From: Lepidodermella squamata
Lineage: Eukaryota > Animalia > Gastrotricha
Direction of reading: 5' to 3'
Length of the DNA: 64,000 bases
Assembly (NCBI GenBank): GCA_047495785.1
Contig: JBLDXI010000032.1
Span: forward strand, 1,550,001-1,614,000
Shown here: piece by piece, positions 1,000 to 33,113 of the stretch
Layout: each line of letters opens with the position of its first letter
Numbering within the stretch: the first letter of the stretch is position 1
Translations under genes and position numbers: made by a program
The notes under the pieces: generated by a model
The model's input: only the letters and a program-made list of their open reading frames with translations
Database searches by the model: none
What the model was told of the DNA's origin: nothing

Positions 1000-1495
1000 T
1001 TACCAGTTGAAAGTGCAGAATGGTGCGTAAAGGCTAAATAAAATAATAATAGAAATATTCAAATTTTTTCAGAAAATTGAAAATAAAAAAATCCACCTTA
1101 ATTTAAATTACTTGTTAAGTTACTTACTCGACACAGGCATCAGCAGCTTTGCAGTTGGTAATGTTGGTAGTTGGCCAGCATCGGCGGTTGAAGCAGACCA
1201 TACAGCTGCCCTCCCAAATCGATCTTTGGCAGTGTTGCAACGCAGTTCTAGGCCACAAAAAGCGTCAATTAAAATCGCTAAAAATATATCAAATCCACTG
1301 GACTTTACTTGACAGTTTCCATACGGCAGTCATATGGCTCCTTTGTGGTGGTCGTCGAGGACTGAGCCTGAGCGAGGTGACCAAGGACGGCGACCAGGAC
1401 GGCGCAAATAAACGCGGCTGAATTATAACAAAAAAATTAGAACATTTTTGCTAGCTGCTTGCTATAGGTCACGCACCAATTGTTACTTTGTACAT
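1000..1495 (-). CDS. Secreted 8-Cys small protein, family member 1 (RRCWP subgroup), 4 exons, 93 aa
   Basis: Exons 1495-1477, 1417-1309, 1247-1128, 1033-1000, all GT-AG, intron phases 1/2/2. Spliced protein MYKVTIAAFICAVLVAVLGHLAQA-QSSTTTTKEPYDCRMETVKTALQHCQRSIWEGSCMVCFNRRCWPTTNITNCKAADACVDLYAPFCTFNW*. Signal peptide plus the Cys spacing shared with six other loci. Confidence 0.9.
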
Positions 1496-2980
1496 ATTCA
1501 ATACGTTCGCTATCAGTAAATTGCTATATAAGCTATGGTGTCTTTTCGGGTTTCTCGAAGACTTTTCAGGCGAGCAAAATTGACTATGGTCTGATGTGTC
1601 GGCCAGTAATTTGTAGCTGTCTTGTATAACTAAGCTATACAGGCCGCGTATATGCCATCGTATAGCACAGCCCTTTACCTTAATGTCATTTTAATGAGCC
1701 TGCCGGTCGGGTTAATTAAACTGCTACACGAGCACGCGTGAAACACTTTTTTCTCCACCTATATAATTCATCGTTGCTAATGTTGTTTAGTATATGCGCG
1801 TCGCAATTTTTTTTTCTCGGCTGCTTTTAGATCATCACAACATGTGTCGATGCTTTGACACCCGCGGCGGCGCCTGCTCAACAAGTGCTCCGCTATCGAC
1901 AACCATCTACAATAACGACAGCATATTTCGCGCGCTTTTTTTCGCGCTGATTTTGCTGATATTATCTTCTTCAATAGCACTGTCTGTAGTGTATAAAGCT
2001 TAATACGTTATGGCTAATAGATTATCATGCTTTCCACGATGACGCTCGTTTGGTCAGCGCTGCGGCGGTGAGTAATGATGTTAAGGCTACGTAGTACCTA
2101 ATTCTCACACTCACGTCGGCAAACATGGAACGTTGCGTGTCGTTTTAAATGACAGGTGTATGTCGAATATCTCACTTTCAACGAGAATGCGGTATGCGGT
2201 ACTGCCTAGCTATAAAACTATCAAACATAACAACTGAGCTTTCATCATTCAGCCAACATTTTAGCGTCAATATATCAGTGATATATTGACACAGATGGTT
2301 CACAGATTGCGTATAGATAGATTTGGATCGGTTTTCGAACTTTTACTCGGGTTTCGGGTTCGGTATTCGATATTCGGTTCTGCTGGATGTAAATAATATG
2401 GTGGCTCTCTAATTTCCTTGTATGCGTTCGCCTTTAGTCTCTTTCTATGCCCAACTTCTGTTTTTCCAAGTTTTAAGTTAATTTTTAATTGATGCATAAT
2501 ATTTTTTTATCGCGCAGGAATTTACATAAAATTAATTGAAATTTCCAAATTTACCAAATTACTTAATAAAAAAAATTGAAATTTTCGTGTGAGCTGAGTA
2601 TTTTTTTGAAATTATTATTTAAAGTGAAATTCGGTTTGCGATTATTGTTGGCGAAATTTTCGAAAAAAGCTAAAGTTGATTGAGTACGTTGCCATGGCTT
2701 AAACTTGCTCCAGCACGAGTCTCTATTAAGGTTTTTTTTTTTGTTCTGCCCAACATTTATCAGCCGAATTGCACATCGGCAATTTCAAGGCCACAAATTC
2801 GCAGACGATACTTAAAACATATTTGACCTATAAAAAATGTCTCTATAGCCAGCGAATGGGCCTGGTTCCATTTTTGCTTCAGGTGCGTTTTCTTATCGTC
2901 GTCTAAACGAAATGCAAATTAACGTCCGAAAAATCCGAATTACCTCAATTTTATTGCTTTGTTTTATTGCTGCATTAAAA

Positions 2981-5044
2981 TCACCATATCACACATGAGG
3001 CCTTATTGCGATGCACCTGAGGGCAGTGGAACGCGTTCGCAAAATTTGAACTCAATCTCGCGACGCCATTGACGCGGAATTTCGGATGCGAATGGCTGTT
3101 CAGAAGCAAAGAATCGTAATTCTCATCGATATTCATGCATTTCGACTGAGCATAGGACACGAAAAATAGTTGATCATCCGCCTGTGATGATACCGAGGAG
3201 TGTTTTCCTTCGAATTCCTCAAAGGCAAATTCAACCGCAACGTTGTCTGCTACGTCTTCTACAAGAGACATATTGCTGCTCGGTACCTTACCTAGTTGGG
3301 CGTAAAATTTCGATAAACACTGCTTCCGTTCGGTAACAAATTCATTATCATCGAATAACCAAGGCGGAAGACGATCGCTGTCAAATGAATGCGCAAGTTC
3401 GTGAAGAAGAGTTGCGAATAAATGGCCATAATTCACCGCTTCAGGGTATGAATCATCGTAATTAGGCGGCATCAGCAATGGCAATAGCAGAGTTATTGCC
3501 CTTTCCGATCCGCCGTGGAAAAAAGCGTTCGCCGCCAGGAAGATCTGACTATGATCTTCGCCGTTACTATGCAAACGACCGAAAGCTCTTCGAATATTGA
3601 AAAAATTTGCGTTGATATGATTCTGAAGATGCGATTGAGGGCTGATGACCAACTCATCGTAAAATTCGTCCAAAATCGATTGATTCACCGACCATAAAGG
3701 GGGATAAATCGCGAACTTGAGATTATCAATTTCATTAAGGAGGATTTCTTGAGTTTCTGAGCTGAATTTTTCCGAAGATACAACTTTCCGCCGAAAAACG
3801 AGTGATGCGTCTGCCATCATTTTTTCGAGGTAAACAACGGTTGATTCGTCGAAATAATTCCGCCTATACAACGAGGCGACAGCTATTGGCATCATGGAAG
3901 CCACCTCAATGTAGCATCGTCTTGAAGTTGACGGTCTTCTAACCAGGTGCCAGAATTCATTTGCACTTAAAAGGCTTAGGAAAATGTTGACAGCTCGCCG
4001 CCCGCGAAAGGTGAAATATTTTTTGTAAAATAGGCGGCACATTTCCGTTAGGAAGCAGCAAAGATTACGATCAAGGTGAAGATTGTTGTCAAAACCAAAC
4101 CCAACTTTAGATCTGATGATGTTGTCAATAGATGGCCAGAATAGGATAGGGCAGCATTTTTGGAATTTCGCAATTGGATCAGTGATGTAGGCGAACGTTT
4201 CGCAGCGATTAATTCGAGTTAATTCGTTTAAATGATCAGCAAGACTTGCAACATCTTCCATTGTTTGCCTTGAGATATCCAGCGCGAGATAAGCGACAAT
4301 TTCATGGATTCTCTCGAGCCTCATCAGGTTCAAGTTACCGGGTCTCGAAATGGAAGATGGCGTAATTTCAATGATACTTTTGAGCGAATATTGAAACAAA
4401 TTCTCAACGTTGAATTGCAGAACTGAGTAGTTTGAATCTCGATTTGAAATAGAATATATGCTTACGAAACTATTGACCAATTTTTTCAAAGACTCGAATT
4501 TTTCCTCATGCGATTCTCGACAGGCTTGGAAGTAGTGCGCGACCTTGAGATCAGTTATCCAACCAGTTTCTGGGTCAATTTCTTCTTCTATAAAAATTAT
4601 TTCAAAATCAGAAAAATTCAAAGTAATTTTCATACCTATAATGTTGATGATTGAATCATCGACATTTATGTCAGAAGCACTGTGAAATCGCGAATTAGCT
4701 AAATTGCCGCACGAGTATTGATAAAAGTCTGAGCAAGGGTCAACAGATGCATTCATAACGCTGAACATCAAAGCCATCCGCCTTAAACATGACCTAGTTT
4801 CACATTTCGACGCAATTTCGTCCTTGGCGTTCTCCAGTGACCTAATTATATGGCTTTGAGGTCGAGCTATCGAAAACCAGAAGAGCAATATAATGACTAT
4901 GGTTGTTATTATTACAATGCCAATTGACGATCTGCCAAAAGCTGGAAGAAAAATTGCAAAGAAATCAATTAAAATAGTTAAATAGTTAAAATTACCTTTT
5001 AAACGATAATTTCTTGATGGGAAATTTCCCGTCGATTGCCTCAT
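2981..5044 (-). CDS. M13 family (neprilysin/ECE-like) type II membrane zinc metallopeptidase, ~653 aa
   Basis: N-terminal TM anchor, VDPCSDFYQYSCG, ANAFF, HELAH zinc motif, EDVAD, HSHPKFRVNG and C-terminal CVIW. Two stop-free 3n introns (4942-4995, 4588-4635) lie inside the 704-aa ORF. Likely ATG at 5044. Confidence 0.92.
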   Translation of the reverse strand: MRQSTGNFPSRNYRLKGNFNYLTILIDFFAIFLPAFGRSSIGIVIITTIVIILLFWFSIARPQSHIIRSLENAKDEIASKCETRSCLRRMALMFSVMNASVDPCSDFYQYSCGNLANSRFHSASDINVDDSIINIIGMKITLNFSDFEIIFIEEEIDPETGWITDLKVAHYFQACRESHEEKFESLKKLVNSFVSIYSISNRDSNYSVLQFNVENLFQYSLKSIIEITPSSISRPGNLNLMRLERIHEIVAYLALDISRQTMEDVASLADHLNELTRINRCETFAYITDPIAKFQKCCPILFWPSIDNIIRSKVGFGFDNNLHLDRNLCCFLTEMCRLFYKKYFTFRGRRAVNIFLSLLSANEFWHLVRRPSTSRRCYIEVASMMPIAVASLYRRNYFDESTVVYLEKMMADASLVFRRKVVSSEKFSSETQEILLNEIDNLKFAIYPPLWSVNQSILDEFYDELVISPQSHLQNHINANFFNIRRAFGRLHSNGEDHSQIFLAANAFFHGGSERAITLLLPLLMPPNYDDSYPEAVNYGHLFATLLHELAHSFDSDRLPPWLFDDNEFVTERKQCLSKFYAQLGKVPSSNMSLVEDVADNVAVEFAFEEFEGKHSSVSSQADDQLFFVSYAQSKCMNIDENYDSLLLNSHSHPKFRVNGVARLSSNFANAFHCPQVHRNKASCVIW

Positions 5045-5459
5045 TGTTAATCTTGAAAGAAAAAAGTAGAAACCAGCATAGCGAATCGGGATCAAAATAG
5101 TCTAAAGCAAACAATCATCCGTTTTTTTCATGGACGGATTGGTCAGTTATAATATAGCTAATTATGCATTCAGAATTGTTTGCCTTAGAAACCGCTATTT
5201 TTTGATCAGCAAACACGGCGCCGACGACGATAGCAGAGCCCTATTAATGCACTGCACTGGAAACTGAGAACATAAATCGATTTTCTTACGGGCGCGATGG
5301 ATTTAACTAACCGTTTTTTTGAGACATTTATTTTTTTCGCTGCATCGATAAATCAAGAGCACACAGGTTAATAGCACCGTTGATGAAAATAAAAGCATCA
5401 GGTATCATAAAATAATTGAAAGCAAGCTGATCTAGCGAAATAATGTCAAAACTAATGGA

Positions 5460-10790: not shown

Positions 10791-10859
10791 GTTTTCCATG
10801 TTAAAAGGCATTTGCATCCAGTTAAAGGTATTAAACTTAAAAAATTAGCTTAATTATGG

Positions 10860-12321: not shown

Positions 12322-14746
12322 TTAGCATTTATTGAATTGCTGACAGGTACCGCGTGAAAGCATCAAATGAAACCAAATTAGGCCGATAAAAGTAACTGAG
12401 TGAACCGTTTGAAAGCTTTGACCGGAATTATCAGCGAGTCCTTCATCCTGAGGCGTCTTCCCATGCGACGGAAGACAAATTTCAGTAATACGCCTCTGTT
12501 GAATGAAAGATTGATGATGAAATCAGGTGGAAAATTAGTATGAAACTCACCGCCGTTTCATGCGTAGGACCACGCAATCCAGCTGCACACGCTAACGCCA
12601 ACCTTGAAATGAATCAAGTTCAAATTGAATTTATTGAAAGCGAAGAATTCGACATACGCTATGTAAGACTGTTCGAATACACCTGAGAACAGTTCCGAGT
12701 AGACTCCCGTGGCGTACACAGGAACATCCTCGCCGCCGTGAGTTTCGGTTCCAAGCGGAACTTGAAAAAATTATCAAATTTAATCACGGACTTTTTCATT
12801 TTTTCGTGAGCATTTCAATGCCCTAATAAGGTAGATATATAAGGTAGATAGGCTTCTAAGAAGACTTCTAATTTTTCAGGTTTAATCTTTCATTCTTACC
12901 TCTGCTCTGCTGCCTGTATCCACGAGCAGTTGCTTCTTCAACAGTGATATTCTGCCGGCTCCCTGAGTAGTCGAACTTGCCATCAGCCCTAACTAATAGG
13001 GCGCCAGGGCCGTTTGCGTACATCAGAGCGGTGTATGTTTTGTTGTCATCCGCCAGATCGACTCCAATACCGAGTATGCTATCTTCATGGCGAAGGTAAC
13101 CTCCAATTGTTAGAGTGTGACTATGATCCGCAGTTACAACGATGATCGTTTCGGATAGGTCGACCATTGATACGACCTTTTCAATCGCTCGATCGAATTC
13201 GATGCCCTCAGTTAGGGCGAAACGGGCGATTCCCCAATGATGGCCATGATCAATGCGACCTCTTAAAACAGCTATCATTGCCGAAATCCTAGAAAATGCA
13301 ATGGATCAAAGCATACCCCTCAACGAACAGGAAAAATCCATTTTCGTTTCGACTCAGAATATTGACTGCTTTTTCAGCCATGTCAACTAGTCTTGGCTGG
13401 TTTGGCCTTGGATATGCGTCTACGAAGTCAAAATGGCCCCAGTTGAACAAACCAAGAACATAGTCGATATTTGCATCGTCCAGAGCTTTCAATTCAGAGA
13501 TTCTAGATACAAATTTTGCGTACTTGCCACCTTTGGATCGGTCTACCAGCCATTCCTGTTTGAAAGAGTTAAAAAGAGGAATGTTATTCGCAAATGAAGA
13601 GGCAAACTTGAATAAGGTTACGTCCATCAGTTCTCGCGCCAGCTATGCCGTTATCGTCGGGATGTTTGATTGAGGTAGGTAAGAACTTTTTTCATGAATA
13701 GAGTTGTCCACGGATAACCAGCTTTTATGGTAAGTATATAAAGCTTACGTAACCTCGTCCACCGGCAAACGCGACTTTGAGGTGGTGAGCGTTTTCTAGG
13801 AATTGAATGGCCAGGTCTTTGCATTGCGGGTGGGTGACGTGAAATCTATGCTAAAATCAAGAGGTTCAGGTTTTTCAGTTCCCAAATAGTCATAGGCACC
13901 TGGGTATAGTTGAGAAACTCGTATCTGCGAAGGGGAGCCGGGATGTTTGCATAGAGAGGTGAAGGTGACGCATGGGTGAGTGTGGTAGTCGTTACAACAC
14001 CAGCGACCTTGCCTTCTCGAACGGCCCAGTGAGCCAATGAATCGACATAACCTTTATTTGTCTCTGAAATATCGAGTTTTGACGCGGAATATTCTATCAT
14101 GGAAAGCTTGGGAAATTATACCGCATGTCAAGTCGCCAGTAGCATCTAGTCCGATGAAACCCTTTCGGGTTTTAACGCCTGACAAATACGCCGTAGCTGT
14201 CCCAGCACTGTCAGCGATTACGCTGTCCAATTCATAAGTCTGGAATGTGAAAGCTGTTGTTAGAAAAATTCTCAAGATTAAACCTCTGACTTTTGAGAAC
14301 CCAGAGAAGGGGAAAGTGTCCCAAATCATGTGATTTTTGTAGAACGGGTCCTTGCTGTAGGCCTCTTTTAATTTCCGCATAGCAGTAACTCCAGATACGC
14401 CCATACCATCACCAACAAAAAGAATCTAGAGAATCTTTACGTAGTTGCGTGTGAGGCTACATAAAAATCCTTACAATATTCTTTGCACGCCGATTAGTGC
14501 TAGAATGGCTGAAGCCCATACTTTTCAACTTATCAATCCGAGCAGCGATTGCGTCTATGCTTTCTTTGTACCAATATTCAGCATTCAGCTTTTCGTCGAG
14601 ACCTGAGTCCAAATCGATACTGAACGGACGGCTTTCAACTGAGAATTGGAGATAAGGCGTATACAATCTGTCGAAATTGTTTTTGGTAAAGTTTTACCTA
14701 AACTGAAGCATAGTGCCAAAATTGTAACCGCCATAGGACTATACAT
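12322..14746 (-). CDS. Alkaline phosphatase 2
   Basis: Same exon layout as AP1. Signal MYSPMAVTILALCFSL; [39 protein letters not shown]. Confidence 0.92.
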
Positions 14747-16956: not shown

Positions 16957-19267
16957 TTAGTGACTGGTAACACGTGAAAGTATCAAATGAAACCAAATTA
17001 GGCCGGTGAAAGTTATTGAGAGAACCGGTGGAAAACTTGGACCAGAATTATTCACGGGTTCTCCAAACCAGGACGTCTTCCCATGTGGTGGAGGACACAT
17101 GTCAGCAATACGCCTCTGTTGAATGAAAGATTGATGATGAAATCAGACAATAATAGTAGTATGAAACTCACCGCCGTTTCTTGCGTAGGACCACGCAGTC
17201 CAGCAGCACATGCTAAAGACCACCTTGAAATGTATCAAGTTGAATTGAATTCATTGAAAGTGAAAAATTCGACATACGCTATGTAAGACTGTTCGAAAAC
17301 ACCTGAGAACAGTTCTGAGTAGACTCCCGTGGCGTACACAGGAACATCCTCGCCGCCGTGAGTTTCGGATTTAAATGGAACTTGAAAAATATCAAATTTG
17401 ATCAGTATAATTTGGCAAATCAACGATGATTACCTCTGCTTTGCTGCAGGTATCGGCGAGCAGTTGTTTCTTCGACAGTGTTATTCTGCCGGCTCCCTGA
17501 GTAGCCGAGCTTGCCATCAGCCCCTACTAATGCGGCACCAGGGCCGTTTGCGTACATCAGAGCGGAGTACGTTTTATTGTCATCCGCCAGGTCCACACCA
17601 ATACCGAGTATGTTATCTTCATGTCGCAGGTAGCCTCCCATTGTCAGAGTGTGACTATGATCCGCAGTTACAACAATGAGTGTCTCGGTTAGATCGACCA
17701 TTGATAATACTTTTTCAATCGCTCGATCGAATTCGATGCCCTCAGTTAGGGCGTAACGAGCGATTCCATCGTGGTGGCCATGGTCGATTCGGCCTCTTAA
17801 TTAAAGTCATTAATCATTGCCAATATCATAGCACATTGAAACAATCAGAACGTACCCTTCAATGAACAGAAAATATCCGTTTTGGTTTCGACTCAGAATA
17901 TTGACTGCCTTTTCAGCCATGTCAACTAGTCTTGGCTGGTTTGGTCCTGGATTGGCGTCTACGAAGGCTAAATGGTCCCAGTTGAACAGACCAAGGGCAT
18001 AGTCGACATTCGCTTCGTCAATTGCTTTCATTTCAGAGATTGTAGATACATATTTTGCGTACTTGCCACCTTTGGATCGGTCTACCAGCCATTCCTGTAT
18101 GAAGCGGCTAACAAGAGGAATTTCGTTCGCAAATGAAGGGACATACTTCAATGAGGTTACGTCCATCAGTTCTCGCGCCAACTTTGCCGTTATCGTCGGG
18201 ATGTGTAACTGAGGTTGGCGTAAACTATTATCAACAGAATGGTCCACGGAATGAGCTTTCACCGTATATCTAATAGCTTACATAACCGCGCCCACCGGCA
18301 AACGCGACCTTGAGGTGGCGAGCATTTTCAAGGAATTGAACGGCCAGGTCTTTGCACTTCGGATGGGTGACGTGAAATTCATGCTAAATTCGAAAGTTTC
18401 AGGCTTCAGCTTTTTCAGTTCCCAAATAGTCATACCTTGGTATAGTTGAGAAACTCGTATTTGCGAAGGGGAGCCGGGATGTTTGCATAGAGAGGTGAAG
18501 GTGACGCATGGGTGAGTGTGGTAGTCGTTACAACACCAGCGACCTTGCCTTCTCGAACGGCCCAGTGAGCCAATGAATCTACATGCCCTTTATTTGTCTC
18601 TGAAATATCGAGTTTTGACGCGGAATATTCTATCATGGAAAGCTTGGGAAATTATACCGCATGTCAAGTCGCCAGTAGCATCTAATCCGATGAAACCCAT
18701 TCGGGTTTTAACGCCTGACAAATACGCCGTAGCAGTTCCAGTACTATCAGCAATTACGCTGTCCAATTCATAGGTCTGGAATGTGAATTGATTAGAAGAA
18801 TTATTAAGGCTACAAATCGAACTTTTGAGAACCCAGAGAAGGGAAAAGCGTCCCAAATCATGTGGTTCTTGTAGAATGGGTCATTGCTGTAAGTCTCTTT
18901 GAATTTCCGCATTGCAGTAACTCCAGAAACACCCATACCATCACCAACAAAAAGGATCTAGGGAATATCCTTCAATTGCGTACAACGCTGACTAGAAATA
19001 TTTACAATATTTCTTGCACGCCGATTTCTGTTTGAATGGCTGAAACCCATCCTTTCCAGCTTGTTAATCCGAGCTGCGATTGCATCTATGCTTTCTTTGT
19101 ACCAATATTCAGCATTCAGCTTTTCGCCGAGAGCTGGGTCAAACTCCATAATGAACGGACGACTTTCAACTGAGAATTGGAGATTAAGCATGCAATATTA
19201 TTTTCGGCACAGTTTTACCTAAGCTGAGGCATAGTGCCAAAATTGTACCCGCCGTAGGACCATACAT
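16957..19267 (-). CDS. Alkaline phosphatase 3
   Basis: Paralog of AP2 (offset ~4.5 kb). Signal MYGPTAGTILALCLSL; [36 protein letters not shown]. Confidence 0.92.
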
Positions 19268-20294
19268 GATTGATTCAACGAATGCCCTATAAAAGTTTCT
19301 TATGGGTGACAATTCAATTGCGATGCTAACGAAAATATGCTGGGAGTTTGAAAGGTGTCTTTTTGCTCATGCAGAACACCAGCTAAACTTAGCGACGTGC
19401 ACACAATAGTGGGCCAGAGCTGTTAGGATGTTAAAAACAAGGTGCACCAGCTTTATCCACTGGTTGAAATATTTGCTTGTATTTCCAGCGATTAGGCCGC
19501 TGGAAAGGATCGTTATCATATACAATGTTGGGTTACCTTTTATTCCAGTTCGATGAAGCGTTTCAATTTCACTGCGCAAAAAATAAATGTACGCATGTTC
19601 AACTGAATTTCAATTCTGATTCAGGATGCGCGTCAATTAGTTCTGGGACAACAGCATTTACAAACTATACCCACTTCACTGATACGATATTTTTAAAAGC
19701 TGGGATCAGATAAAAAAAGGAGCGCTATTTAAATCTCCAACAGGGAGATATGATACTCAATACTCAATACGAAATGAGTTATTGAGCTGTTCAATTTTGA
19801 CTCGCATTGTTTCGCCAGGGTTGAGTGTGTTTCAAATTTTGCCTCATTTTATATTGCTTTACGTTAATATTTATTCAAATACACGATTATCAAACATTTT
19901 CGGTGTTGGGTGCGGCTTCAAATATAAACCACGCATTTTGCTCGCCATCATCAGGCCGTCTTTTCTTTTTCAGCCTTCTCTATTTCATAGTTTCATTATT
20001 TTTAGGCATCCGAAACCGTAATCCGCTTGCGCTGAAGTGTTACTGCCATTGGTCAAATGTCAAATATATAATTTAATGTAACAAAAACACAAAAGTTACC
20101 ACGTTTCAGCTTATCTCATGACTTGCCGCAGGCTTAAGCGAATTACTTCACGCCTCTGACCACGGCCAACGGGCAAACATGTGTTAGCTAACATTTAGGC
20201 GGTAAGTCAACTTTGAAAATATAGAGCACTGACCGGCAGCCTTAAATTCGTTCATTTCAACATAATTCTGCTTTGGAATATGTCGTGCTTTAGG

Positions 20295-20753
20295 ATGAAG
20301 CAATACACAGGTAATACCATTCATGCACTTGAGGTAGTAAAGTCTTAATTTTACCGAAATAGTTGTATCGATTCTGGGCCTTTTTCTTCTCGTCAGTCTG
20401 GCCGCAGCTCAGGGGCAAACCGATTGCCGCACGCCCATCATAAGGTGATTACATGATTTGCACTCTTATCCGCAAGTCACAAATATTCTCTAAAATTGAA
20501 CTTTTATTCCCTGCAGCGCTGCCCTCGACAGGTGCTTAGGATCGGTCAATCAGTCCAGGTGCTGGAATTGCCTCACTAGGAGATGTTGGCCAAGGTACGA
20601 TGTGAAAAATTGTGCCGAAGCTGCCGCTTGTTTCGCGTGAGTTAACATTTGACTGTTCATGCTGATGCTGATGCATTTCATTTTCACTCACATAGAGCTA
20701 ACGTCTGGGATTGCTCTCATGGCCAATTTATCGTCAACGATGTTCCTACATGA
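20295..20753 (+). CDS. Secreted 8-Cys small protein, family member 2 (RRCWP subgroup), 4 exons
   Basis: Exons 20295-20310, 20363-20444, 20517-20636, 20696-20753 (an in-frame ATG also at 20280). Protein MKQYTVVSILGLFLLVSLAAA-QGQTDCRTPIISAALDRCLGSVNQSRCWNCLTRRCWPRYDVKNCAEAAACFAANVWDCSHGQFIVNDVPT*. AATAAA at ~20868. Confidence 0.9.
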
Positions 20754-20923
20754 GCTGCCGAGTTAAGACCATTTAAAATCGATTCAGAGGATCAGACTTT
20801 CTGTGTGGACGACGTGGCTGTGCAAATACTGTAAATGTCTTTGATTCATTCTCGTAGCGAATTTCAGGAATAAAAAAAAACATAAAGAAATTCCATGTCA
20901 GAGCAATACGCGAATCCGAGCAA

Positions 20924-21745: not shown

Positions 21746-22256
21746 AATGGTCTATACTTTCGACCAACTTCGATGATTTTATAGTTTATAGTTTGTGATG
21801 GCGTGCCTCGAGATTTTCTGACATATCTGTCATTTATTACTAGCCTAGTCCAAACACACGATAGGCTTGGTGAAAATTGGAGAATGGCATGACTTATTAG
21901 CTGAAATCCTTCCAGTTCGATGCGAACAAACATGACAGCTTCATCATAACCAGATCTTCTTACAGTCTAACGGGGGCATTATTAGGGTACCTTGCTCATT
22001 ATAGAATAGGCTTGACGATCCTAACCATTAAATTTCCTTGGGTGACATCGGCACTGGCACTGGTGGCAAAAGCAAGAAATAAAGACGCAACAGCATATTT
22101 TTATTGTGCATATTTTAAGCCCTAACGCATTCAAAGCATCAGATCAGTTTTAAATTATTTAGATTTTTAATAAACACTTTGATAACAAAAGTCGATCTCA
22201 TAAACTTCTGCCGGTTCTTCATTCATTTGATTATCAGCAGGACAAACTCACAAGCT

Positions 22257-24787
22257 ATGACAATCAAATTGTTCTTAGCTGTAATCTTAGGCTCTGGTCT
22301 CAGCGTCCAAAAAACTGAAGCAAAAATAATTCCAATGAATACGACCATACCAGAATCTATGCGTTCAGACATCTGGAGGGAGAGTGACAATTTCACGGAC
22401 TTGCAGGACCGGCCGAAGTTGCTGCGTGTCCTGACATCCATGATCTACTCTGGACTGAATCATGTCGGACCTACTTCAGTTCTAGCCGTAAGACTGGCGA
22501 CTGAAAAGCTGAAAGCGCTGCCAAACTGGTTGCCAGGCTACGACATACAATACGATTTGATTGATGATCAATGCGATGATGCAGTTGCAATAAACGAAAT
22601 GACAAAAAAGTTGCGTTATTACGAGGAAGTCGAGAACAAAGCCGTGTTGCCGCTGGCTGGCCTTATGGAATACGCAGCTGATAGCCAAATGAAATTAGCA
22701 AATATAATGAAAGGTTTCAACATGATTGGCATGAATATTTACCTGACACCTCAAGTTGCGGCGAACAAGAAGCGATATCCAAACTACCTGCCTTTCGGTG
22801 AGCCTCAAGACTATTTTGTTCCTGCTGGTCTCGACTTCATGCAGAAAATGGGCTGGAATCGTTTTGCTGTAATATCGGACACAAGCTCATACGATGTTAT
22901 GGTACGTTTTCAACTGTGATCGTGAATCCCACCTCATATGTTTCTTCTCTTTTTTTAAAGCTCGATTCGGTAGTTGTTAAGGAGGCTGAGGCGCGCAAGA
23001 TGCATATTGTATTCATGGGCCGGTTTTGGGAAGGCACAGAAGATGCTTACGAACTTGATTCTTTATTCAGCGACTTGAAACACAAGGAGCCGAGAATCAT
23101 TTATCAGAACACAATGAGAAACGGCCTGCCTGTCGCATGTTACCTTCACAAGTATGGCCTCTACGGTCCTAGGATGGTGATTATATCATACTCTTGGACA
23201 ATGTTCGATGAAAATACTCCGATACCAGAATTTTTGCAATCATGGTGCTCTACAAGTATGATCCTCGAAGTTTTGCAAAGCTCGATTTTTTTCGCAGATG
23301 GCCCGATGGCTGATGTTTATGGCCCAGATGCGAAGGACTCTATGGGCTACACCAAAGATGGCTTTTTGGACATTCTGAGGAACAGCGTCGACGACATTTT
23401 TCAGGCCAATAGCTATGAATACATCACTCCGATCTTTTATGACAAAGCTATCATTATGGGATACATACTGAATTACACCGAAACCTATTTAAGGCAAGAA
23501 AACTCAACACTCTCCGAGTGGACCATGGATTCGCCCCATTACAAACGCAATCCCCAGAAAATTCTTCGGATATTCAAGGAAATGGCAGGTAAAATAGATT
23601 TGGTTGGAATTAAGGGGGATTGGAGTTATGATACCAAAAGGGATTTGCCATCAGGGGGTATGCCGATCATCTTCCTCCAAGTGAAAGTATCAGACGGCCA
23701 CAGTATGCCTACAACAATCGGCTATTACAAATCGAACAGATTGCCTGAGAAATTGGTGTTGTATAAAGAACAAATCACCTGGGACACAGCAGATGGCAGT
23801 GCTCCCAAAGACGAACTGACAATCGTTCACATAGGGAAGCCCCTTCTCCCTCTGATAGTCAACATAGCCCTTCTTTTTGTTGCTGGAATCATTTACGGTG
23901 TTATTCTAGTCATCATTGCTTTGAAGTTGAAGCTTGATAGAAAGCAAAATCATCGTGATTACCAAATCATTGCTGGAAATGTTGTGCTGCTTTCACACGT
24001 TTTCGCTATTCCAATTGGACTTTTGAAGGATCCAAGCTGGAATTGTGGAGCAGTGGCTATGCTGGTCGTTATTGGATTTTCGATTCTTCTATCAGCATTG
24101 CTGGAAAATCTGGCTGATGGAGTAAGAAAGCTATCGAGCCCTGATCGTGAATCGAGCAAGCGTTTTCCAACGTTTTACCGTAAAGCTCATTTCACAGTAT
24201 ATGGGCCGCCTGCTTTCCTCTTGATAGGCATTTTGCTCTCAAACTCTGGCAGTGAGCTAGTTCTATTGGAATTTGAGTTCTCTGAGACTGACAGCAGTTT
24301 GGCCTATCAGTATGAATTCATGGAATGCCGATTGATTTCTGCATTATGGGAGACTACTACCGCATTGGCATTCACGGCGATCGCAGCTGCCGTTATGTTA
24401 TTATCCTTGTTTCGCGCCACTTTTTTGGCATTCAGAGCGATTTCTCTCATCAAGAAGCGAGGCGGGAGCCCTAATAGCTCACGCGACTTGAAATTGAATG
24501 CCATCTCCGTCTATTTGATCGTCAGTTTTTGCTTCGCAGGCTTGTTTATTGGATTGCTGTTGGGTGATGCTAATGCCGCGTTGACTATTTTGATTGCCAT
24601 CATCGCATTTCTCATCGTTGCATTTAGCATCAGCAGCACTGCATGGGTACTGCTATCGGCGGCGGAACCGCAGACATGTCGACCTGTTACGTCAACTATA
24701 ATAAATGTGCGTCCAGCATCGTCAACAAACACCAATCTCAGCAGACTAGGCTCGTTACCTACCTCAAACCTAATCAGTCATTACTAG
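22257..24787 (+). CDS. Divergent class C GPCR, GABA-B-receptor-like (Venus flytrap + 7TM, no Cys-rich linker), ~823 aa
   Basis: Signal peptide, LPGYDIQYDLIDDQCD, YPNYL, MGWNRFAVIS, EPRII, ITWDTADGSAPKD, seven hydrophobic segments. Single phase-0 intron 22902-22960. Confidence 0.85.
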
Positions 24788-25261: not shown

Positions 25262-25275
25262 GTCGCTATGGCAAC
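25262..25275. promoter_or_regulatory. Candidate RFX X-box upstream of 8-Cys member 3
   Basis: GTCGCTATGGCAAC matches RTHNYYWTRRNRAC; ~430 bp upstream of ATG 25701. Confidence 0.35.
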
Positions 25276-25700: not shown

Positions 25701-26154
25701 ATGAACAAGCTGATTTTTGGTGAGTCTTATTAATAGTTTTTAAGGCGAATGACCGTTATGAACCTTTCCAGGAGCCTTATGCTGTCTGGCGCTAGCCTCG
25801 TTCGCGACGGCTGATATGTACCAGATGTTGGCCGCCCACGTGCCGTGTCCCACGGTGTTGCCTGTTCTTCAGTAATATTTAACCCATCTCAAAATGTGTA
25901 TAAAAATTCCATAAAATCATTCCAACAGCGAACTGTGTCCGAATGACAACTACGCTTCTCATGACTGTGTTGCCTGCATTGTCGGGGAGTGCCGAAAGGA
26001 AGCTGGCAATACGGTGAATCGTAACAACGTAGATTGCACCAAAGCCGAGGAGTGCTTGAGGTAAGCTTCCCTTGAAGGCTATTCTGTTTCGGCATTTTTC
26101 TATTTCCTCCATTTAAAAAGGCGAAAAGCGGCAACGTGCAAGAACGGACGCTAG
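25701..26154 (+). CDS. Secreted 8-Cys small protein, family member 3, 4 exons
   Basis: Exons 25701-25719, 25772-25871, 25929-26060, 26121-26154. Protein MNKLIFGALCCLALASFATA-DMYQMLAAHVPCPTVLPVLHELCPNDNYASHDCVACIVGECRKEAGNTVNRNNVDCTKAEECLRRKAATCKNGR*. Confidence 0.9.
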
Positions 26155-27565
26155 AGCAACGGGCAGGCAATCGAATTTCGATTTGAAGAATCTTTTTGAA
26201 TAAGTTCATAGGGCTTAATACATAAAGACGTATAATTTACCGCTTGATAAATAAAATTTGAGTTTAACAGTAGCTGGAGTCTCAATTCTCATTTTTGTCG
26301 TGTAACATGAGGCTAATGCCGCATTTAATGCGCTTTTAACCGCATTTTCAGCCGATTTTCAGTCGAATAACGTGGGACGCGAGCGAAGCCAGTTTTAGCT
26401 ATCGTTGTATTGAAATGAAAAGCCAGAATAAATACATCCACAAAATGGGTTTCGTCGAAATCCAAGTGGCACTTGATAAACATTTGAAGGGATCAATTCT
26501 CTAATTAACCTATAGTGAACCACCCTTTAGTTATAGTCAATAAAAGGAGATCTTCCAAAGCCACTTCGAAATATTTTGACAAAGAGCTTTTGATGGCTAT
26601 AATCGTGGACATTGAGTTAATTTGCGCAGAAGAAAGACCCAAACGATTGAAAAAGCTGGAGTTGCACGAGGTCGCCACGCTGGGTGAACGTAAACACCTG
26701 GTAAGAACTACAGAACGAAGCTAACGCGATCCGCTGCGTTTACGGAAAGGTAATTGAAACTGAACGCAGTTCACGCGAAGCATATCAGCCTCGGAATGAA
26801 CAAGCGAAGTTAAGCTTGCCAACGCTCCAGGGTAACAGGTTCCGAAGACGTTGTCCAATGTCCTATGGTATATACGTTGAGATCTACCGAGCGAAGCCAG
26901 TCGTGCGAGTAGCTGCAAAACCGGTGCAGTCTCATCGACATGGCGATCGAATATCGGGCTGTCGAGTACGCGGACCCACTATCAGGACCACTTAGCGAAT
27001 TTTAGCGTCATTTGACCGCTTAAACGACGAATTTTCGGTGCCCAGCATGACTTCCATTGTAATCGCAAGGGCGCGTGTGACGCTTCAGGAAAAGGGGGAA
27101 CCTCGCAATGAAAGGAGCGGCCGTAGTGTCTCCTGAGTAAAATCCTGTTGTAATGTCTTGCTTGTTACCACAAACTATAAATAAATAAATAATTTCAGCT
27201 TTAGATGCGATGAATAATGGCAAGTTCTTCAGGTTGCGCGCACTCAACACTATGAAAACAACCCCGCTAAAATGTCCATGTTGTTAGAATAAGAACATTT
27301 TTTGAACAAAGCAAGGAACGCTTTTTTAACCACACCGGCTAAATAAGAGCTATTGCGTGTTTACCTACCTATATGCATATGTGTGCGCAGAACGCATGTC
27401 GTCCTGAGTTAGTCTAAAGAGAGGCGATGTCTAGCTGTTTTTTCTCTATGAATATACGCTGCCAACCTTTTACCGCAAATAAACATGGGCTAGTTTTCTA
27501 AGCCATCTTGTGAAAAACCAAAGCACGTTTGTTCTTGAACGGACGCCAGTCATCGCAGTCGCGGC

Positions 27566-27572
27566 TATAAAA
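27566..27572 (+). promoter_or_regulatory. TATA box of 8-Cys member 4
   Basis: TATAAAA in GC-rich flanks ~100 bp upstream of ATG 27665. Confidence 0.6.
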
Positions 27573-27664
27573 GGGGCAGGGCAAGGCTGGGAAATGTCAT
27601 CGAAATAATCTCTTCAACAAATCATCAGCTTTACAAACTCACGAACACCTTCCGACTACAAACC

Positions 27665-28135
27665 ATGTCCAACTTGACGATTGGTAAGCAGTGATTCTCA
27701 TTGAATACAATAGAGCCATAACTTGTCCTATCTATCTCTTGCAGTTGCTTTTTGCTGCTTGGCCTTGGCCGCTATGGTTTCGTGCCAGTACCAGCCGCCG
27801 CAGTTCCCTGCTGGTCGCAAAATGCCTTGCCCCGAGCTTAAAAGTATTGTCAGGTAAACACTTAGAATCAACATCAAATGTCTTGTAAACATTCTTCGCA
27901 TTTATTTAACAGCGATCACTGCACTGTTGCCAGCACTAAGCAATTGAACTTCAACTGTGTCATGTGCATGGTCAACCCTTGCAAGCCTACTGGAAATTTC
28001 AACCCTAGCTCGATTGACTGCACCGAGAAAAAGACCTGCCTTGAGTAAGCCAAACTCTGCCAATTCAAAACCTGTTCTCATGTTTTTTCTCATTTTGTCA
28101 GATCGAACTTGAGCCAGTGCAACTCCTCGATGTAA
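27665..28135 (+). CDS. Secreted 8-Cys small protein, family member 4, 4 exons
   Basis: Exons 27665-27683, 27745-27853, 27913-28044, 28102-28135. Protein MSNLTIVAFCCLALAAMVSC-QYQPPQFPAGRKMPCPELKSIVSDHCTVASTKQLNFNCVMCMVNPCKPTGNFNPSSIDCTEKKTCLESNLSQCNSSM*. Confidence 0.92.
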
Positions 28136-28295
28136 AAAACGCAATTCTTTCAATAACGAACATACATGGCCTTTAAGTTATATTATACACATTCGAGATT
28201 AAGTGATTACGAACCCTGAGAATACCGGTTATTCATTGTTAATCAACTTTTTAATAAAGACTAAATATTCCTTTTCGCAACTCATTCCGTCTTAT

Positions 28296-29609
28296 TTATT
28301 CGATCAAATCTAGCAAATAATTTGGCTCTAATGGGTTAAACTCAGAATAATCCAGATAACTGATTAAAACAACTGGCAAGTCAAGACTTTTCAAGGCTTG
28401 ACGGCGATCATCTAATCCAAGAGGAAGGTTGGCTAGGATAGCCCTTCTCGCCGTATTCTGAAGCGAAAGAGGGAAACGTTTGGCAAGAAACGCAAGATAT
28501 TCCGTTTGATCAGCTGATTTCTCCAGCGTTGGAAGCTTCAATGTTTGGCACGGCTTGTAACTCTGAGCAGCGACTACTATGTCGAAGAAAACATCTCGAC
28601 GGCCCCATAGCTTCAAACTCAACTGGGTGCCGCATCGTGATTCATCCCGTAGGAAAAAGCGTGTTCTTTTATCGAAAATCGTATCTTCCGGGTTAACGCA
28701 ACACCTAGCCCCGGCTCGAATCAGTGGTATCGTGGCGTATATCAAGAATCGAGCAGCCATTCGTTCGACCAACTCTTGATTATCCCAAGTTGAGTTCGCG
28801 AAGAACAGAACTTCGTACAAGTTCGTTGTCATCGGATTACACGAAAGGAGTGAACAGGAATTCGGAGTGTTGAGAAAATGCCGGCCAGCGTTAATAAGGG
28901 CAGTGGAACAATCATCGCTGTAGAAAGCGAGGATGTGGAGCTGTTTGAGGGCTTGAAGATCGGAATTCGGGCCAGGTCGAAAAGGAGACGCTGATGCATT
29001 GTCGCTACATTTTGAAAGAAGCATCCGCAAAATTCTACCAAGGTCAAGTCTTTTCCTATTGTCAGGCCAGTTTCGCTTGATTTCTTCAATGCAAACTGAG
29101 ATGGGTCTTGATTCGTTTTTCGTTAAGCCGAAATCTACAGGAGCATTGTAGTTCAGCAATATATTGACACTTTCTGGTGAGCTCTGACGAATCGCTGTAA
29201 GAAGAAGACATGATTTCGCACCATTCGAAACTTCGTTACCGTGAATTTCCAGATATTCATTTAGTTTTCGTGAAGCCTCGGTAATGATGTAACAATTGAG
29301 GAGGATTATCTCAGAAACTGATGTTTTACATGTAATATTTTCAATAAACCGTATGATGATGTTGAAAGCTCCATTCTTTCTGAAAGTGAAGTCGTAAGCC
29401 GGAAATGCAGCCATCCTGACCAATAGCTTCATACCACTGCTTGAATCGATGAGCGGATAAAAGATATGCTCGTCGCCATTCGCACTATGAACAGCATCTA
29501 CGAAATCGCATAGATAGCGGCTTACATTGCAGTTCGCTCGTAGCTTGGATGAAAATTCATCGAATTCCATGCCAAATTCAAGATCGGAAAAGTTGCAATC
29601 TAGATTCAT
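28296..29609 (-). CDS. Intronless ankyrin-like and SOCS-box protein (ASB-like Cullin5/ElonginBC adaptor), 437 aa
   Basis: Ankyrin-like LLLTAIRQSSPESVNILLNYNAPVD. C-terminal SOCS box PLSLQNTARRAILANL...LKSLDLPVVLISYLDY. Confidence 0.8.
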   Translation of the reverse strand: MNLDCNFSDLEFGMEFDEFSSKLRANCNVSRYLCDFVDAVHSANGDEHIFYPLIDSSSGMKLLVRMAAFPAYDFTFRKNGAFNIIIRFIENITCKTSVSEIILLNCYIITEASRKLNEYLEIHGNEVSNGAKSCLLLTAIRQSSPESVNILLNYNAPVDFGLTKNESRPISVCIEEIKRNWPDNRKRLDLGRILRMLLSKCSDNASASPFRPGPNSDLQALKQLHILAFYSDDCSTALINAGRHFLNTPNSCSLLSCNPMTTNLYEVLFFANSTWDNQELVERMAARFLIYATIPLIRAGARCCVNPEDTIFDKRTRFFLRDESRCGTQLSLKLWGRRDVFFDIVVAAQSYKPCQTLKLPTLEKSADQTEYLAFLAKRFPLSLQNTARRAILANLPLGLDDRRQALKSLDLPVVLISYLDYSEFNPLEPNYLLDLIE

Positions 29610-30309
29610 TGCGTCTGACCTTTTTCTGAAAAATAAGTCGACAGCTCAGTTTCGCGGGTGTATTTGCTACTGCTGCGTTCATTTCGAATTTTTATCGTTG
29701 GCCGCGCGAGTGAAAATTCACATCTGCTGTCATATGCTGTCAAAATAATCATGTCATTTGGAAAGTGAAAATCGATAGCCGCAATCACTCGCACTAGTTT
29801 ACGCACAGCACGATAATTTCATGCACCGACTTAATTAATGCACGAAAACTGACCTAGTGAAAAAGCCGGAATATTTCGGGTTTTTTCATCAATTTATTAT
29901 GAGCCTGATTTCTTTCTCCTGAGAGGGCGAATTTGAGGCTTCAGGGTCATTTTATTGGGTCATATTATGAAATGCTGTGCTACTCCGTCCAGGTGTATAG
30001 AGTCTCCTTTTAGCTGCGAAGATCTGCGCGGTTTCGACATCTGGCTTTCACAGAAATCCTGGAATTTTATAGATTATAGTCCATATCGGAATAGTCTTGA
30101 TCAATAATCTTTAAAAACCAGGTTAAAAGGACAACTTTAGCTGCAGAGCTTAATCACTCATGCGATTCAAAGATCGAACGATGATTGTTTACCCAACCGC
30201 ATTTTTTTACAGCGACCTACTTGAACCCATCCTCTTCAAGCTGCAAGTCGCAATGGTACTTGTTCCTATAATTCATCCGTGATATAAGACATTTCGAAAA
30301 AAAGCTAAG

Positions 30310-30720
30310 ATGAAGTCTACAATTGCCTTGCTATGCCTAGCCTTGTGTTTCGCTTCAATCGATGGCGAGAACCGACCGGCGTTCAATTTGGCTAAAGTTC
30401 CTTGTCAAGAGCTGATTCCCTTGATGATGTAAATTCCGCCTATACCATAATCTGAACCTTAAGCGGTAATAATTTTCTCATTTTCAAGGACGTCCTGCTC
30501 TTACAACAATCGTTTCAACTTCAATTGTCCCATGTGCACTTTCTCGCGTTGCAATAATGGCGAGCAGCTCCCGGATCCGAACACTGTAGATTGCAGCATG
30601 GCAAAACAGTGCATTGAGTAAAGCTTGAAATCATCTGTTTATCGCTAATTCCTGTAATGACTTGATTTTAGAACCTACGCACCTGCCTGCAGCAAAGAGA
30701 GTGGTTCGACGGCTAATTGA
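30310..30720 (+). CDS. Secreted 8-Cys small protein, family member 5, 3 exons
   Basis: Exons 30310-30428, 30489-30617, 30672-30720. Protein MKSTIALLCLALCFASIDG-ENRPAFNLAKVPCQELIPLMMTSCSYNNRFNFNCPMCTFSRCNNGEQLPDPNTVDCSMAKQCIETYAPACSKESGSTAN*. Confidence 0.92.
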
Positions 30721-31403
30721 GGCAATCGAATGGAATTAATCCGCAGGCTGCTGAAGCACGCTGAACTTGAATCAAAACTCCAAGTTATGAAAAGTATACC
30801 CGATGAGCATCTAAAATAAATCGTTCCATACCTTCAAGTTGTGAGGCATAAACAAAGTTCCTGCGCGACAGATCTGCCGCAAGCGAAGAAGGTTGAGAGT
30901 CAAGGCCAAAAGAGACTCGATTGTTGACACATCATCGGTGCCCTTCTAGATTAGAAAGTTATGTTTATTGAGTGAATTATATTATGACCAGCTTGGGATT
31001 CCACATTTCACCATTCTTGAAACCTTGCTGTGAAAACTGCCCGAGAAATGTACGTGGAAGAACTGCGATTCTCTGACGCGACTTGATGGAGCTTCAGCAT
31101 CAGCTGAATTTTCCGAGCGCGAAAGCAAGTTTGCCAAAATCTCCATTGATAGCTACATGATTCATTTCTAGGGGCTTATTATAGCTACAATTGGGGAAAA
31201 TAACGACATACCGGGCCACGACTGTTTGGCGATTACTGAACCGTTTCAATGTTTCAAAACACTTCTCGCCAAAAATATCAAAAATGTCTTGTGACAATCA
31301 CGCCATTGTGTTACTTGAATGGGACGAGCACGACTGTGCAACCTCGGGTATTTAAAGCAGGAAAAAACAGTCAATATACAAGCATTAAGGAATATCGTAA
31401 ATA

Positions 31404-32044
31404 ATGACCCAGACCATTATCGGTGAGTTTCTTCAGCTGTGAGCTTATATCGATGAGTGAAATATTTCAAAACTTCAAGTTGCAATTTGTTTGATCGCCG
31501 CTTTCGGCTTTGCCGCGTGCCAGCAGCCCTACTACAACAACCAGCAGCAGCGGGGCGGTCGCCAATGGGGAGGTCAGCAGCGAGACAGCAACAACGGAAC
31601 AAATCCATGGAACGGACAACGACCTGCTAACGAAACCAACTGGACCAATGGAGGCTATGGCCAGAACGCAACCCGCCAGGGTCAGCGTCAGGGTCAGGGT
31701 CAGGGCCAGGGTGGTCGCTATCACGAGGAGCGATGCTCTGAAGTGAAACGATTTGTTGAGTAAGGAATTTCTTAGTTGGTTCAACTTTTTATCGGCATCA
31801 TCCTTTTTGCAGTGAGCGTTGCCCTGCTGTTTCGACAAATGCCAAGCAGTGCAAGCAATGCTTATGGCAGAAGTGCGGCTCCCTTCTTCGACCGACTGGA
31901 GCATCAACCGAAACATTCGATTGCACTCCAGCCCAGACTTGTGTTGCGTGAGTCACCGCAAACAACCTTCGATACAATTGATAATGATTATTTCATTACA
32001 GATCCAGCTTGGCCGGCTGCGTAAACCCGACCGCAGCGAACTGA
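31404..32044 (+). CDS. Secreted 8-Cys protein, member 6, with G/Q/N-rich N-terminal extension
   Basis: Exons 31404-31422, 31480-31759, 31813-31947, 32002-32044. Protein MTQTIIVAICLIAAFGFAAC-QQPYYNNQQQRGG...QGQGQGQGGRYHEERCSEVKRFVDERCPAVSTNAKQCKQCLWQKCGSLLRPTGASTETFDCTPAQTCVASSLAGCVNPTAAN*. TATTTAAA at 31349. Confidence 0.92.
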
Positions 32045-32381
32045 TTATTTGGCAACAAAAGCAAGATCGCTTGACTCGTCTTGCAGAAAAGAGACGAAAA
32101 TTGTAAAATGACATTTTTAGCTACCAGAATAGACCGTTAATCTCTGATGACTTGTGTGCTATTAAAGCCGCCAATTCGCCTATCATAAGTGTCGTTGAAA
32201 ACGTCGGGTAAATAAACGGGGCGGTCGAGTTTCATGGTTTGCCAAAAGACACCGCTTTGTCCGCCATTGTTTGGTTTGCACGCAAAGAAGGCGAGCTAAT
32301 TAATGAATGAATGAACGCCTCCGATGGCAGTTGTTTGTCAAGTTTAAGGAGAGGCTCGGCACGACACACGATCCGGACGAG

Positions 32382-32388
32382 TATAAAA
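32382..32388 (+). promoter_or_regulatory. TATA box of 8-Cys member 7
   Basis: TATAAAA ~75 bp upstream of ATG 32459. Confidence 0.6.
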
Positions 32389-32458
32389 CGCGTCAAAATG
32401 TGCACGCAGCGGAAGATTCCACTACCTGAAAGACTAAGAATTTATTCCATATCAAAAG

Positions 32459-33113
32459 ATGACCCGCTTTCTCTTCGGTAAGTGCTGACATCAATAATGA
32501 TCAGGCAATTGGAAACGTAAATTCACTTTAGTTTTAGCCGCTTTGGTTGCTGTTGCCTCTGCCCAGTGGAACCAACAGCAGCAGTACTACGGCCGCCAAC
32601 AGCAGCAACAGCCCCAGTCTAATGATCCTTGGGTTCAGCAGCAAGCTCAGATGTGGAATCGCCCGCAACAGCAGCCTCAACAACAGATGAACAGCATGCA
32701 GTTCGATCCTCAGGCTATGATGGCTAGCGCTGTTTCCAACAGCAACAACAACAACGCTAATATGGGAGGTCGTGGGGGTTCGATGGGCGGTGGCATGCCA
32801 AACCTTGCCAACATGCCGTGCAAGAATGAACTCGCTCCGGTTGCCCTGTAAGATCTCTCATTTGTCCCAAAAATCATTCTTCTAATTTACTCATTCTTCT
32901 ATTAGGATGCGATGCCCCATGCAGAATGGCCAATTCAACATTAAGTGCTTGATGTGTGTCTACCAGCAATGCAGTTACCTTCTCCAATCCAGCCCGGTCG
33001 ACTGCAAACAGGCGGGACAGTGCCTTGAGTAAGACTGCTCGAATTACTATTTTCAATTGCATTGATTTTTTCGTTAATTTTTCAGAAACAACTATCGAAG
33101 CTGTCAAAAATAA
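32459..33113 (+). CDS. Secreted 8-Cys protein, member 7, with Q/M/N/G-rich N-terminal extension
   Basis: Exons 32459-32477, 32532-32847, 32906-33028, 33086-33113. Protein MTRFLFVLAALVAVASA-QWNQQQQYYG...GGGMPNLANMPCKNELAPVALMRCPMQNGQFNIKCLMCVYQQCSYLLQSSPVDCKQAGQCLENNYRSCQK*. Confidence 0.92.

Follow-up and report, generated by a model that had tools for sequence, protein, structure and literature searches.

A seven-member family of predicted secreted eight-cysteine mini-proteins in a 64-kb stretch of the Lepidodermella squamata genome

Local arrays of genes for small, secreted, cysteine-rich proteins are common in animal genomes. Examples of such lineage-restricted families are the Eig71E/L71 late-puff cluster of Drosophila, the macin and defensin arrays of invertebrates, and mollusc protein pheromones such as attractin. 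Small secreted disulfide-rich proteins rank among the chief origins of new folds, of ligands for receptors, of inhibitors and of components of biomaterials, and no other genes escape annotation as often, since none of their exons reaches the cut-offs applied to open reading frames (ORFs). Here we describe seven genes of this generic kind, that is a tandem family for small, predicted secreted, disulfide-rich proteins with shared intron positions, in a 64,000-nucleotide stretch of the genome of the gastrotrich Lepidodermella squamata (assembly GCA_047495785.1, contig JBLDXI010000032.1, positions 1,550,001 to 1,614,000 of the forward strand; hereafter the window). The genes, designated loci A to G, are small and split by introns, one of them lying on the minus strand and six on the plus strand, and their products comprise 91 to 161 amino acids (aa). 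This genome represents a lineage that is barely covered by public protein sets, and the complete seven-gene family, first spotted by eye, was verified using nothing but the sequence.

The family and the arrays named above are alike in that the genes are short and clustered, encode a signal peptide and have an even number of invariant cysteines, with little else conserved and a size class of ~70–100 aa. They differ in that no sequence, Pfam or PDB link connects those arrays to the window family, which is set apart by eight isolated cysteines with x2/x4/x5/x7 spacing, by the ancient divergence of its paralogs and by two long linkers rich in Gln, Asn and Gly (Q/N/G-rich).

Gene models and the cysteine frame

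An earlier note had placed seven genes between positions 1000 and 33113 of the window, each spliced at canonical GT-AG introns into a signal peptide followed by a fixed pattern of eight cysteines. Scanning the window in six frames for C-x2-C-x4-C returned 13 matches, whereas 20 shuffled versions averaged 2.45. An extended exon of the type C..C-x2-C-x4-C..[D/N]C-x5-C is common to seven of the 13 matches, which are located on stop-free segments of 46 to 63 codons at the very places given in the earlier note. This core exon spans Cys2 to Cys7, i.e. six of the eight cysteines and ~70% of the domain. A hidden Markov model built from it detected exactly seven loci in the window with 48.7 to 68.7 bits (50.4 bits for locus A, 64.4 for locus C and 68.7 for locus E), everything else scoring 9.2 bits or less. 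A candidate eighth copy at ~34.19 kb (minus strand) was discarded as a chance motif because it falls into a DDAH-type gene that is read in a different frame.

When GT-AG models were enumerated without bias, full models emerged for loci B, D, F and G, that of locus D ranking at the top of its enumeration; the others were obtained by reading the sequence, and all seven splice models were then fixed and verified. Locus A (1000..1495, minus strand, 93 aa) consists of exons 1495-1477, 1417-1309, 1247-1128 and 1033-1000. On the plus strand follow locus B (20295..20753, 91 aa) with exons 20295-20310, 20363-20444, 20517-20636 and 20696-20753; locus C (25701..26154, 94 aa) with exons 25701-25719, 25772-25871, 25929-26060 and 26121-26154; and locus D (27665..28135, 97 aa) with exons 27665-27683, 27745-27853, 27913-28044 and 28102-28135. 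The array continues with locus E (30310..30720, 98 aa; exons 30310-30428, 30489-30617 and 30672-30720), locus F (31404..32044, 158 aa; exons 31404-31422, 31480-31759, 31813-31947 and 32002-32044) and locus G (32459..33113, 161 aa; exons 32459-32477, 32532-32847, 32906-33028 and 33086-33113). All seven starts in the earlier note coincide with the ATGs of these independently derived models, and its end coordinate, 33113, is the last base of the locus G stop codon.

All 20 introns are indeed of the GT-AG type and measure 52 to 94 nucleotides (nt), which is within the range of the introns of a neighbouring dynein gene (~53-300 nt). Their lengths are 59/61/94 nt in locus A, 52/72/59 in B, 52/57/60 in C, 61/59/57 in D, 60/54 in E, 57/53/54 in F and 54/58/57 in G. 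The phases 1/2/2 proposed previously were reproduced for A, B, C, D, F and G; locus E lacks the first intron, leaving its signal peptide uninterrupted and its phases at 2/2. Intron 3 occupies the identical codon position, 1.67 codons past Cys7, in all seven loci. The distance from intron 2 to the following Cys2 is 2.33 codons in C to G and 5.33 codons in A and B, and the signal-peptide intron is found at codon 6.33 in five loci and at codon 5.33 in locus B.

Signals of coding function agree with these models. Codon log-odds, scored against the codon frequencies of the window's Pfam-verified genes, are positive in the model frame alone and negative in both shifted frames at each of the seven loci (model-frame values of +0.145 for locus A and +0.019 for locus B). 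The guanine-plus-cytosine (GC) content is 48-56% in exons versus 26-35% in introns, and all introns but one contain stops in three or two of the three readings. Each locus possesses its own ATG, stop codon and poly(A) signal, the latter being AATAAA or ATTAAA 84-167 nt past the stop: AATAAA follows at a distance of 159 nt in A, 116 in B, 96 in C, 118 in D, 95 in E and 84 in G, and locus F has ATTAAA at 117 nt and AATAAA at 167 nt. The mention of several clear TATA boxes in the earlier note was a fair one, as a strict TATAWA box, expected 0.08 times per 150 nt, precedes only A, D and G (TATATAG 35 nt, TATAAAAG 99 nt and TATAAAAC 77 nt upstream of the respective ATG), and TATA-like variants can be read by eye at C, E and F.

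Two side observations concern loci A and B, the pair of paralogs with the greatest similarity. Both are preceded, at a distance of no more than 250 nt, by the 9-mer GACCGGCAG (at ~1570-1700 on the minus strand for A and at ~20240 on the plus strand for B), either as a regulatory element that has been retained or by chance. At locus B, where an in-frame ATG at 20280 also fits the model, a second possible last exon (20788-20857, plus strand) behind an intron of 151 nt keeps C-x7-C as well; it might serve as an alternative 3' exon, or the match might be fortuitous.

The spliced products have a common order of parts, namely signal peptide, spacer and one domain of ~57-66 residues in which eight cysteines are invariant. 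Every member starts with a hydrophobic core followed by a predicted cleavage site, as expected from the signal peptides assigned by the earlier note. Cleavage is predicted after 17-24 residues with small residues at positions -3/-1 (the signal peptide of locus A has 24 aa), and the predicted mature N-terminus is Gln in five members. The previously described frame C-x10/11-C-x8-11-C-x2-C-x4-C-x8-15-C-x5-C-x7-C is present in all seven spliced models, with spacings of 11/8/2/4/8/5/7 in both A and B, 10/9/2/4/14/5/7 in C, 10/11/2/4/12/5/7 in D, 10/9/2/4/13/5/7 in E, 10/9/2/4/15/5/7 in F and 11/10/2/4/10/5/7 in G. Cys6 is preceded by Asn in A and B and by Asp in C to G, again in line with the earlier reading. 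Neither an adjacent cysteine pair nor C-x-C nor C-x3-C occurs within the frame of any member. The spacer comprises 5-14 residues in A to E, with a short Ser/Thr run in locus A, and is a Q/N/G-rich low-complexity linker in F and G. The linker of locus F, placed between signal peptide and cysteine domain, has 71 residues, 58% of them Gln, Asn or Gly, and includes a (CAGGGT)x6 hexanucleotide repeat (31677-31712); that of locus G has 85 residues with 51% Gln, Asn or Gly. Net charges are near-neutral, ranging from -1 to +2 for the mature proteins A to E and from -2 to +3 for the cysteine domains.

The matching intron positions mark the seven loci as descendants of one ancestor. We consider it probable that they are intact, independently transcribed genes for secreted eight-cysteine modules, which arose by tandem duplication long ago. 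Each product would carry a cleavable signal peptide, a spacer and one eight-cysteine domain. Upon secretion, pairing of the eight cysteines into four disulfides would generate a small rigid extracellular module whose segment around C-x2-C-x4-C may be helical. The fixed spacers (x2, x4, x5-x7) and the Asp/Asn residue before Cys6 would hold the scaffold, and the length-variable loops Cys1-2, Cys2-3 and Cys5-6 would carry the binding specificity of each paralog, if any.

Relatives and age of the family

To find relatives, searches were made exon by exon. At E<=10, the seven core exons had a single match in Pfam, a zinc ribbon hit by locus F with 13.4 bits against a cut-off of 25.2. The exons encoding signal peptide, Cys1 and linker gave one sub-threshold low-complexity match at E<=1, and no exon reached the gathering threshold of any Pfam-A family. 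When a profile of the seven core exons was compared with PDB sequences, nuclear-receptor zinc fingers came out best (E=0.36), reflecting a chance pattern of cysteines. The same profile, run against 1.84 billion protein representatives, found two entries at E<=0.001, one a Sushi-type and one a tandem-repeat protein; both are spurious because they are internally repetitive and were matched in 6-10 stretches. A word-indexed protein search with a 60-aa stop-free segment of locus D returned no candidate, and a survey of the literature for CX2CX4C and CX5CX7C spacings led only to Fe-S/zinc motifs, an IGFBP-type venom peptide and the Antigen-5 C-terminus. The claim that no described family matches is hence upheld for Pfam, PDB sequences and the 1.84 billion representatives, which contained nothing credible.

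The reach of these searches can be gauged from the family itself. In leave-one-out comparisons, held-out paralogs score 15-33 bits, corresponding to E values of 0.004 to 1400 at the scale of the library, and the profiles of A/B and C to G are mutually blind (-1.3 to 6 bits). The blank search of 1.84 billion proteins is weak evidence because even true paralogs score so low, a caution that applies to the method in general. The profile search shows that the window's own products and their near-orthologues are absent from this library; that the family is lineage-specific, as the earlier note had it, cannot be concluded, since relatives as distant as the paralogs were out of reach.

This bears directly on the idea that the family is a diverged branch of a described superfamily, with a saposin-like, PSI-like, EGF-like or insulin/relaxin-like fold. 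Such an origin keeps some weight because the domain was searched and folded as single exons, and the sequences are short and fast-drifting; judging by the low leave-one-out scores, sequence searches had little reach. However, the core exon, with most of the domain and its cysteines, finds nothing in Pfam other than the chance zinc ribbon and nothing in PDB sequences other than the chance zinc fingers, and its spacing departs from the described frameworks considered below. We regard this alternative as rather unlikely, if more probable than the others discussed below.

The alignment of the seven domains has no invariant columns other than the eight cysteines. Outside these columns, identity between paralogs is 2-29%, in keeping with the high divergence of inter-cysteine residues noted before. 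Two subgroups can be told apart: the short Cys5-Cys6 loop, the sequence Arg-Arg-Cys-Trp-Pro and an Asn before Cys6 are common to A and B, and in C to G this loop is longer and Cys6 follows an Asp. Of the 21 pairs, 15 are saturated at synonymous sites (proportion of synonymous differences, pS, 0.63-0.99). In the six pairs for which the ratio of nonsynonymous to synonymous substitution rates (dN/dS) can be estimated, all of them comparisons between paralogs, it is 0.24-0.75 and always below 1. Because synonymous sites are saturated too, the divergence of the loops is explained by age: their variability is what long divergence alone gives, and accelerated evolution is not shown. The paralogs are ancient and do not represent a recent expansion, and the picture of a fast-evolving toxin-like set is not supported. 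Survival of all eight cysteines through saturating divergence requires selection, and the family is an old array kept by selection on its scaffold.

Proposed role and genomic neighbourhood

As to function, we tentatively propose that the proteins are secreted components of a coat, mucus, adhesive or egg envelope, or partners binding such material. Linkers of low complexity are found more typically in proteins of matrices, mucus, adhesives or egg coats, and those of F and G, being Q/N/G-rich, suggest a component of a matrix, coat or secretion no less than they suggest a toxin or antimicrobial peptide. The Ser/Thr run of locus A and the near-neutral cysteine domains are further features of composition in line with such a role. 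Our ranking places such a component first, a defence effector second and a signalling ligand third, with even the first choice held at less than even confidence.

Several points weigh against the picture of a functional family of helical secreted modules with this role. The role is assigned from composition only. The structural basis consists of two models of the core exon alone (Cys2-Cys7), computed with AlphaFold2 (AF2), both of low confidence: the alignment of all seven sequences gave three helices at a mean predicted local distance difference test score (pLDDT) of 55.7, and the alignment of C to G gave one helix over C-x2-C-x4-C at a pLDDT of 60.4. A helix across Cys3-Cys5 is the sole element common to both models and may be taken as a hint, which lends weak support to the earlier wording 'probably helical'. 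No motif shared upstream of the loci exceeds the null expectation, and there is thus no sign of co-regulation. Locus B is the weakest of the gene models and could be decaying, because its splice donors are weak (GTAATA and GTGATT) and its coding score is the lowest. Exact look-up of three window ORFs in protein collections retrieved no record, and metagenome scans with the A/B core alignment and with a neighbouring SOCS-box ORF were both empty.

The earlier note had read the hypervariable loops as typical of toxins, antimicrobial peptides (AMPs) and pheromones. That is, the genes might encode effectors of defence or offence, i.e. AMPs, toxins or inhibitors borne in venom or mucus, with loops under positive selection. 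The proteins are small, secreted by prediction, disulfide-rich and clustered, with only the cysteines invariant, and no housekeeping family matches them, all of which would suit effectors. However, the saturation of synonymous sites attests to age and makes acceleration not demonstrable, all estimable dN/dS values lie below 1, and the near-neutral charge speaks against a classical cationic AMP; neutral charge and old age together disfavour a rapidly diversifying venom set. Moreover, conservation of the signal peptides does not clearly exceed that of the mature parts (as read, unquantified), unlike in many toxin superfamilies, and the long low-complexity linkers of F and G are atypical of effectors. 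The step from variable loops to toxins, AMPs or pheromones is not supported, and we hold an effector role to be doubtful.

Still less probable, in our estimate, are extracellular signalling ligands, i.e. hormones, pheromones or receptor ligands with one receptor per paralog. A secreted compact four-disulfide module with variable loops would suit receptor binding, and the five predicted N-terminal Gln residues would allow cyclisation to pyroglutamate as in many secreted peptides. In addition, an ANF-receptor gene, identified by Pfam, lies between members of the array (22179-24787, plus strand), a matter of proximity only. Against ligands speak the lack of dibasic processing sites flanking the domain (by reading), the fact that seven ancient side-by-side paralogs, and likewise low-complexity linkers, are untypical of hormones, and that nothing ties the family to the neighbouring receptor genes. 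That the loci are not genes at all, i.e. chance ORF fragments, dead pseudogenes or exons of one large multi-domain gene, could draw on the weak splice sites and marginal coding score of locus B and is highly improbable. Once spliced, all seven loci read from ATG to stop without interruption; the positions and phases of their introns are conserved, codon bias is confined to the model frame, exons and introns contrast in GC, and every stop is followed by a poly(A) signal. Motif matches exceed those in shuffles, one unit lies on the opposite strand with unrelated genes interspersed, and the eight retained cysteines imply selection.

The window is eukaryotic with 40-47% GC, and scans for tRNAs and Rfam families gave no match. 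Neighbouring genes, identified by Pfam on the window's long ORFs, are of animal type. Within the mini-protein array, besides the ANF-receptor gene (a 623-codon ORF at 22916-24787, plus strand, has no Pfam domain), lies the SOCS-box ORF of 437 codons (28296-29609, minus strand). The window also contains four M13/neprilysin paralogs (2981-5095 on the minus strand; 36542-38131, 38913-40550 and 41333-42937 on the plus strand); with 25-31% mutual identity they are old. As read, the copy at 36542 lacks the HExxH zinc motif and that at 41333 lacks ExxxD, and some copies may have lost catalytic activity. No relative of a neighbouring M13 ORF was retrieved by word-indexed search at E<=1e-20. An alkaline phosphatase gene has undergone recent tandem duplication (~12.3-14.5 kb and ~16.9-19 kb, minus strand; ORFs 12868-13278 and 17810-18262; 60-95% identity by tblastx), which contrasts with the ancient mini-protein and M13 duplicates of the same region. 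The DDAH-type gene around 34.19 kb and a WD40 gene complete the neighbourhood.

At the far end of the window lies a complete axonemal dynein heavy chain gene of the DNAH5/8-like type (43006-62664, minus strand), ~4,550 residues of which align to a protein of the annelid Dimorphilus gyrociliatus. Apart from its short introns it has a single long intron of ~3.3 kb that harbours, in opposite orientation, a nested ORF of the ANF-receptor family with 755 codons (57974-60241, plus strand). AT-rich tandem repeats with periods of 7-50 nt occur in its introns at 47197-47308, 50863-51066, 55488-55595 and 61106-61211. Measured with the 1060-aa C-terminal ORF, identity is 78-84% to contigs of the European Nucleotide Archive (ENA) metagenomes, 74% to the cluster with Dimorphilus, 70.5-72% to Brachionus (rotifer), ~66-69% to molluscs, vertebrates and a glass sponge, and 57-62% to insects. 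These values speak against an insect or dipteran origin, which the short introns and Kozak-like starts had suggested at first; the host is best described as an animal with a compact genome, probably a small spiralian, and no sign points to a human, viral or pathogen source. A rough distance tree, which mixes dynein paralogs and is no more than indicative, places the window dynein with the metagenome contigs, next to rotifer and annelid. The closest contigs come from one environmental metagenome (L001, ENA ERZ23486787 scaffold_905, 84%; L005, scaffold_2184, 78%); these two are compact and eukaryotic and hint at an unsampled relative of the window's host. The contigs with the closest dynein relatives (L001-L006) contain no member of the mini-protein family and no synteny beyond the dynein gene.

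Comparison with known disulfide-rich systems

The earlier note had set the frame apart from ShKT, CS-alpha/beta defensin, macin, knottin, WAP, saposin and plant lipid transfer protein (LTP)/prolamin patterns, and this is borne out by spacing and by the lack of Pfam matches. Saposins contain six cysteines in ~80 aa, with C-x2-C and C-x5-C and with spacers of ~10-28 residues between pairs. The window family is like SapB in that the core is bounded towards its two ends by C-x2-C and C-x5-C, respectively, and in being predicted to be secreted and possibly helical. It differs by its eight cysteines and by the 4 and 8-15 residues between corresponding positions, and the core exons did not match Pfam SapB at E<=10; saposins can be excluded because of cysteine number and spacer length. 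The PSI domain is likewise an eight-cysteine extracellular module, of ~50 aa, with an internal C-x2-C, and its Trp beside the following cysteine is seen in loci A and B as well. PSI domains occur inside large receptors rather than as free mini-proteins, their remaining spacing differs from that of the window family, and Pfam PF01437 (PSI) matched none of the exons.

WAP domains, too, are small and secreted with eight cysteines and four disulfides. WAP and most eight-cysteine toxin frameworks contain an adjacent CC, which is central in WAP, or C-x-C; neither is found in the window family, and no Pfam WAP match was obtained. CS-alpha/beta defensins and macins pair a C-x3-C on a helix with a C-x-C on a strand, both of which are missing from the frame, again with no Pfam match. 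Non-specific LTPs (nsLTPs) need CC and C-x-C motifs, likewise missing here. Thus, WAP, nsLTP, CS-alpha/beta defensins and macins are excluded because the frame has no CC, C-x-C or C-x3-C. Pfam matches to ShKT, knottin or plant nsLTP/prolamin families were likewise not obtained with any exon.

To our knowledge, a framework that combines the absence of adjacent cysteine pairs with short x2/x4/x5/x7 spacers fits none that has been described. The family may, tentatively, represent an undescribed four-disulfide fold and cysteine framework restricted to small spiralian animals of a lineage that has been little sampled and has its only close relatives in public data among metagenome contigs. If so, it would be a new structural class of secreted mini-protein, and a framework truly new to the catalogue would add a scaffold that ORF-based annotation has missed. 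If the family is instead a diverged branch of a known fold, that fold would be extended into a new animal group, with saposin and PSI domains offering the partial likenesses of spacing described above.

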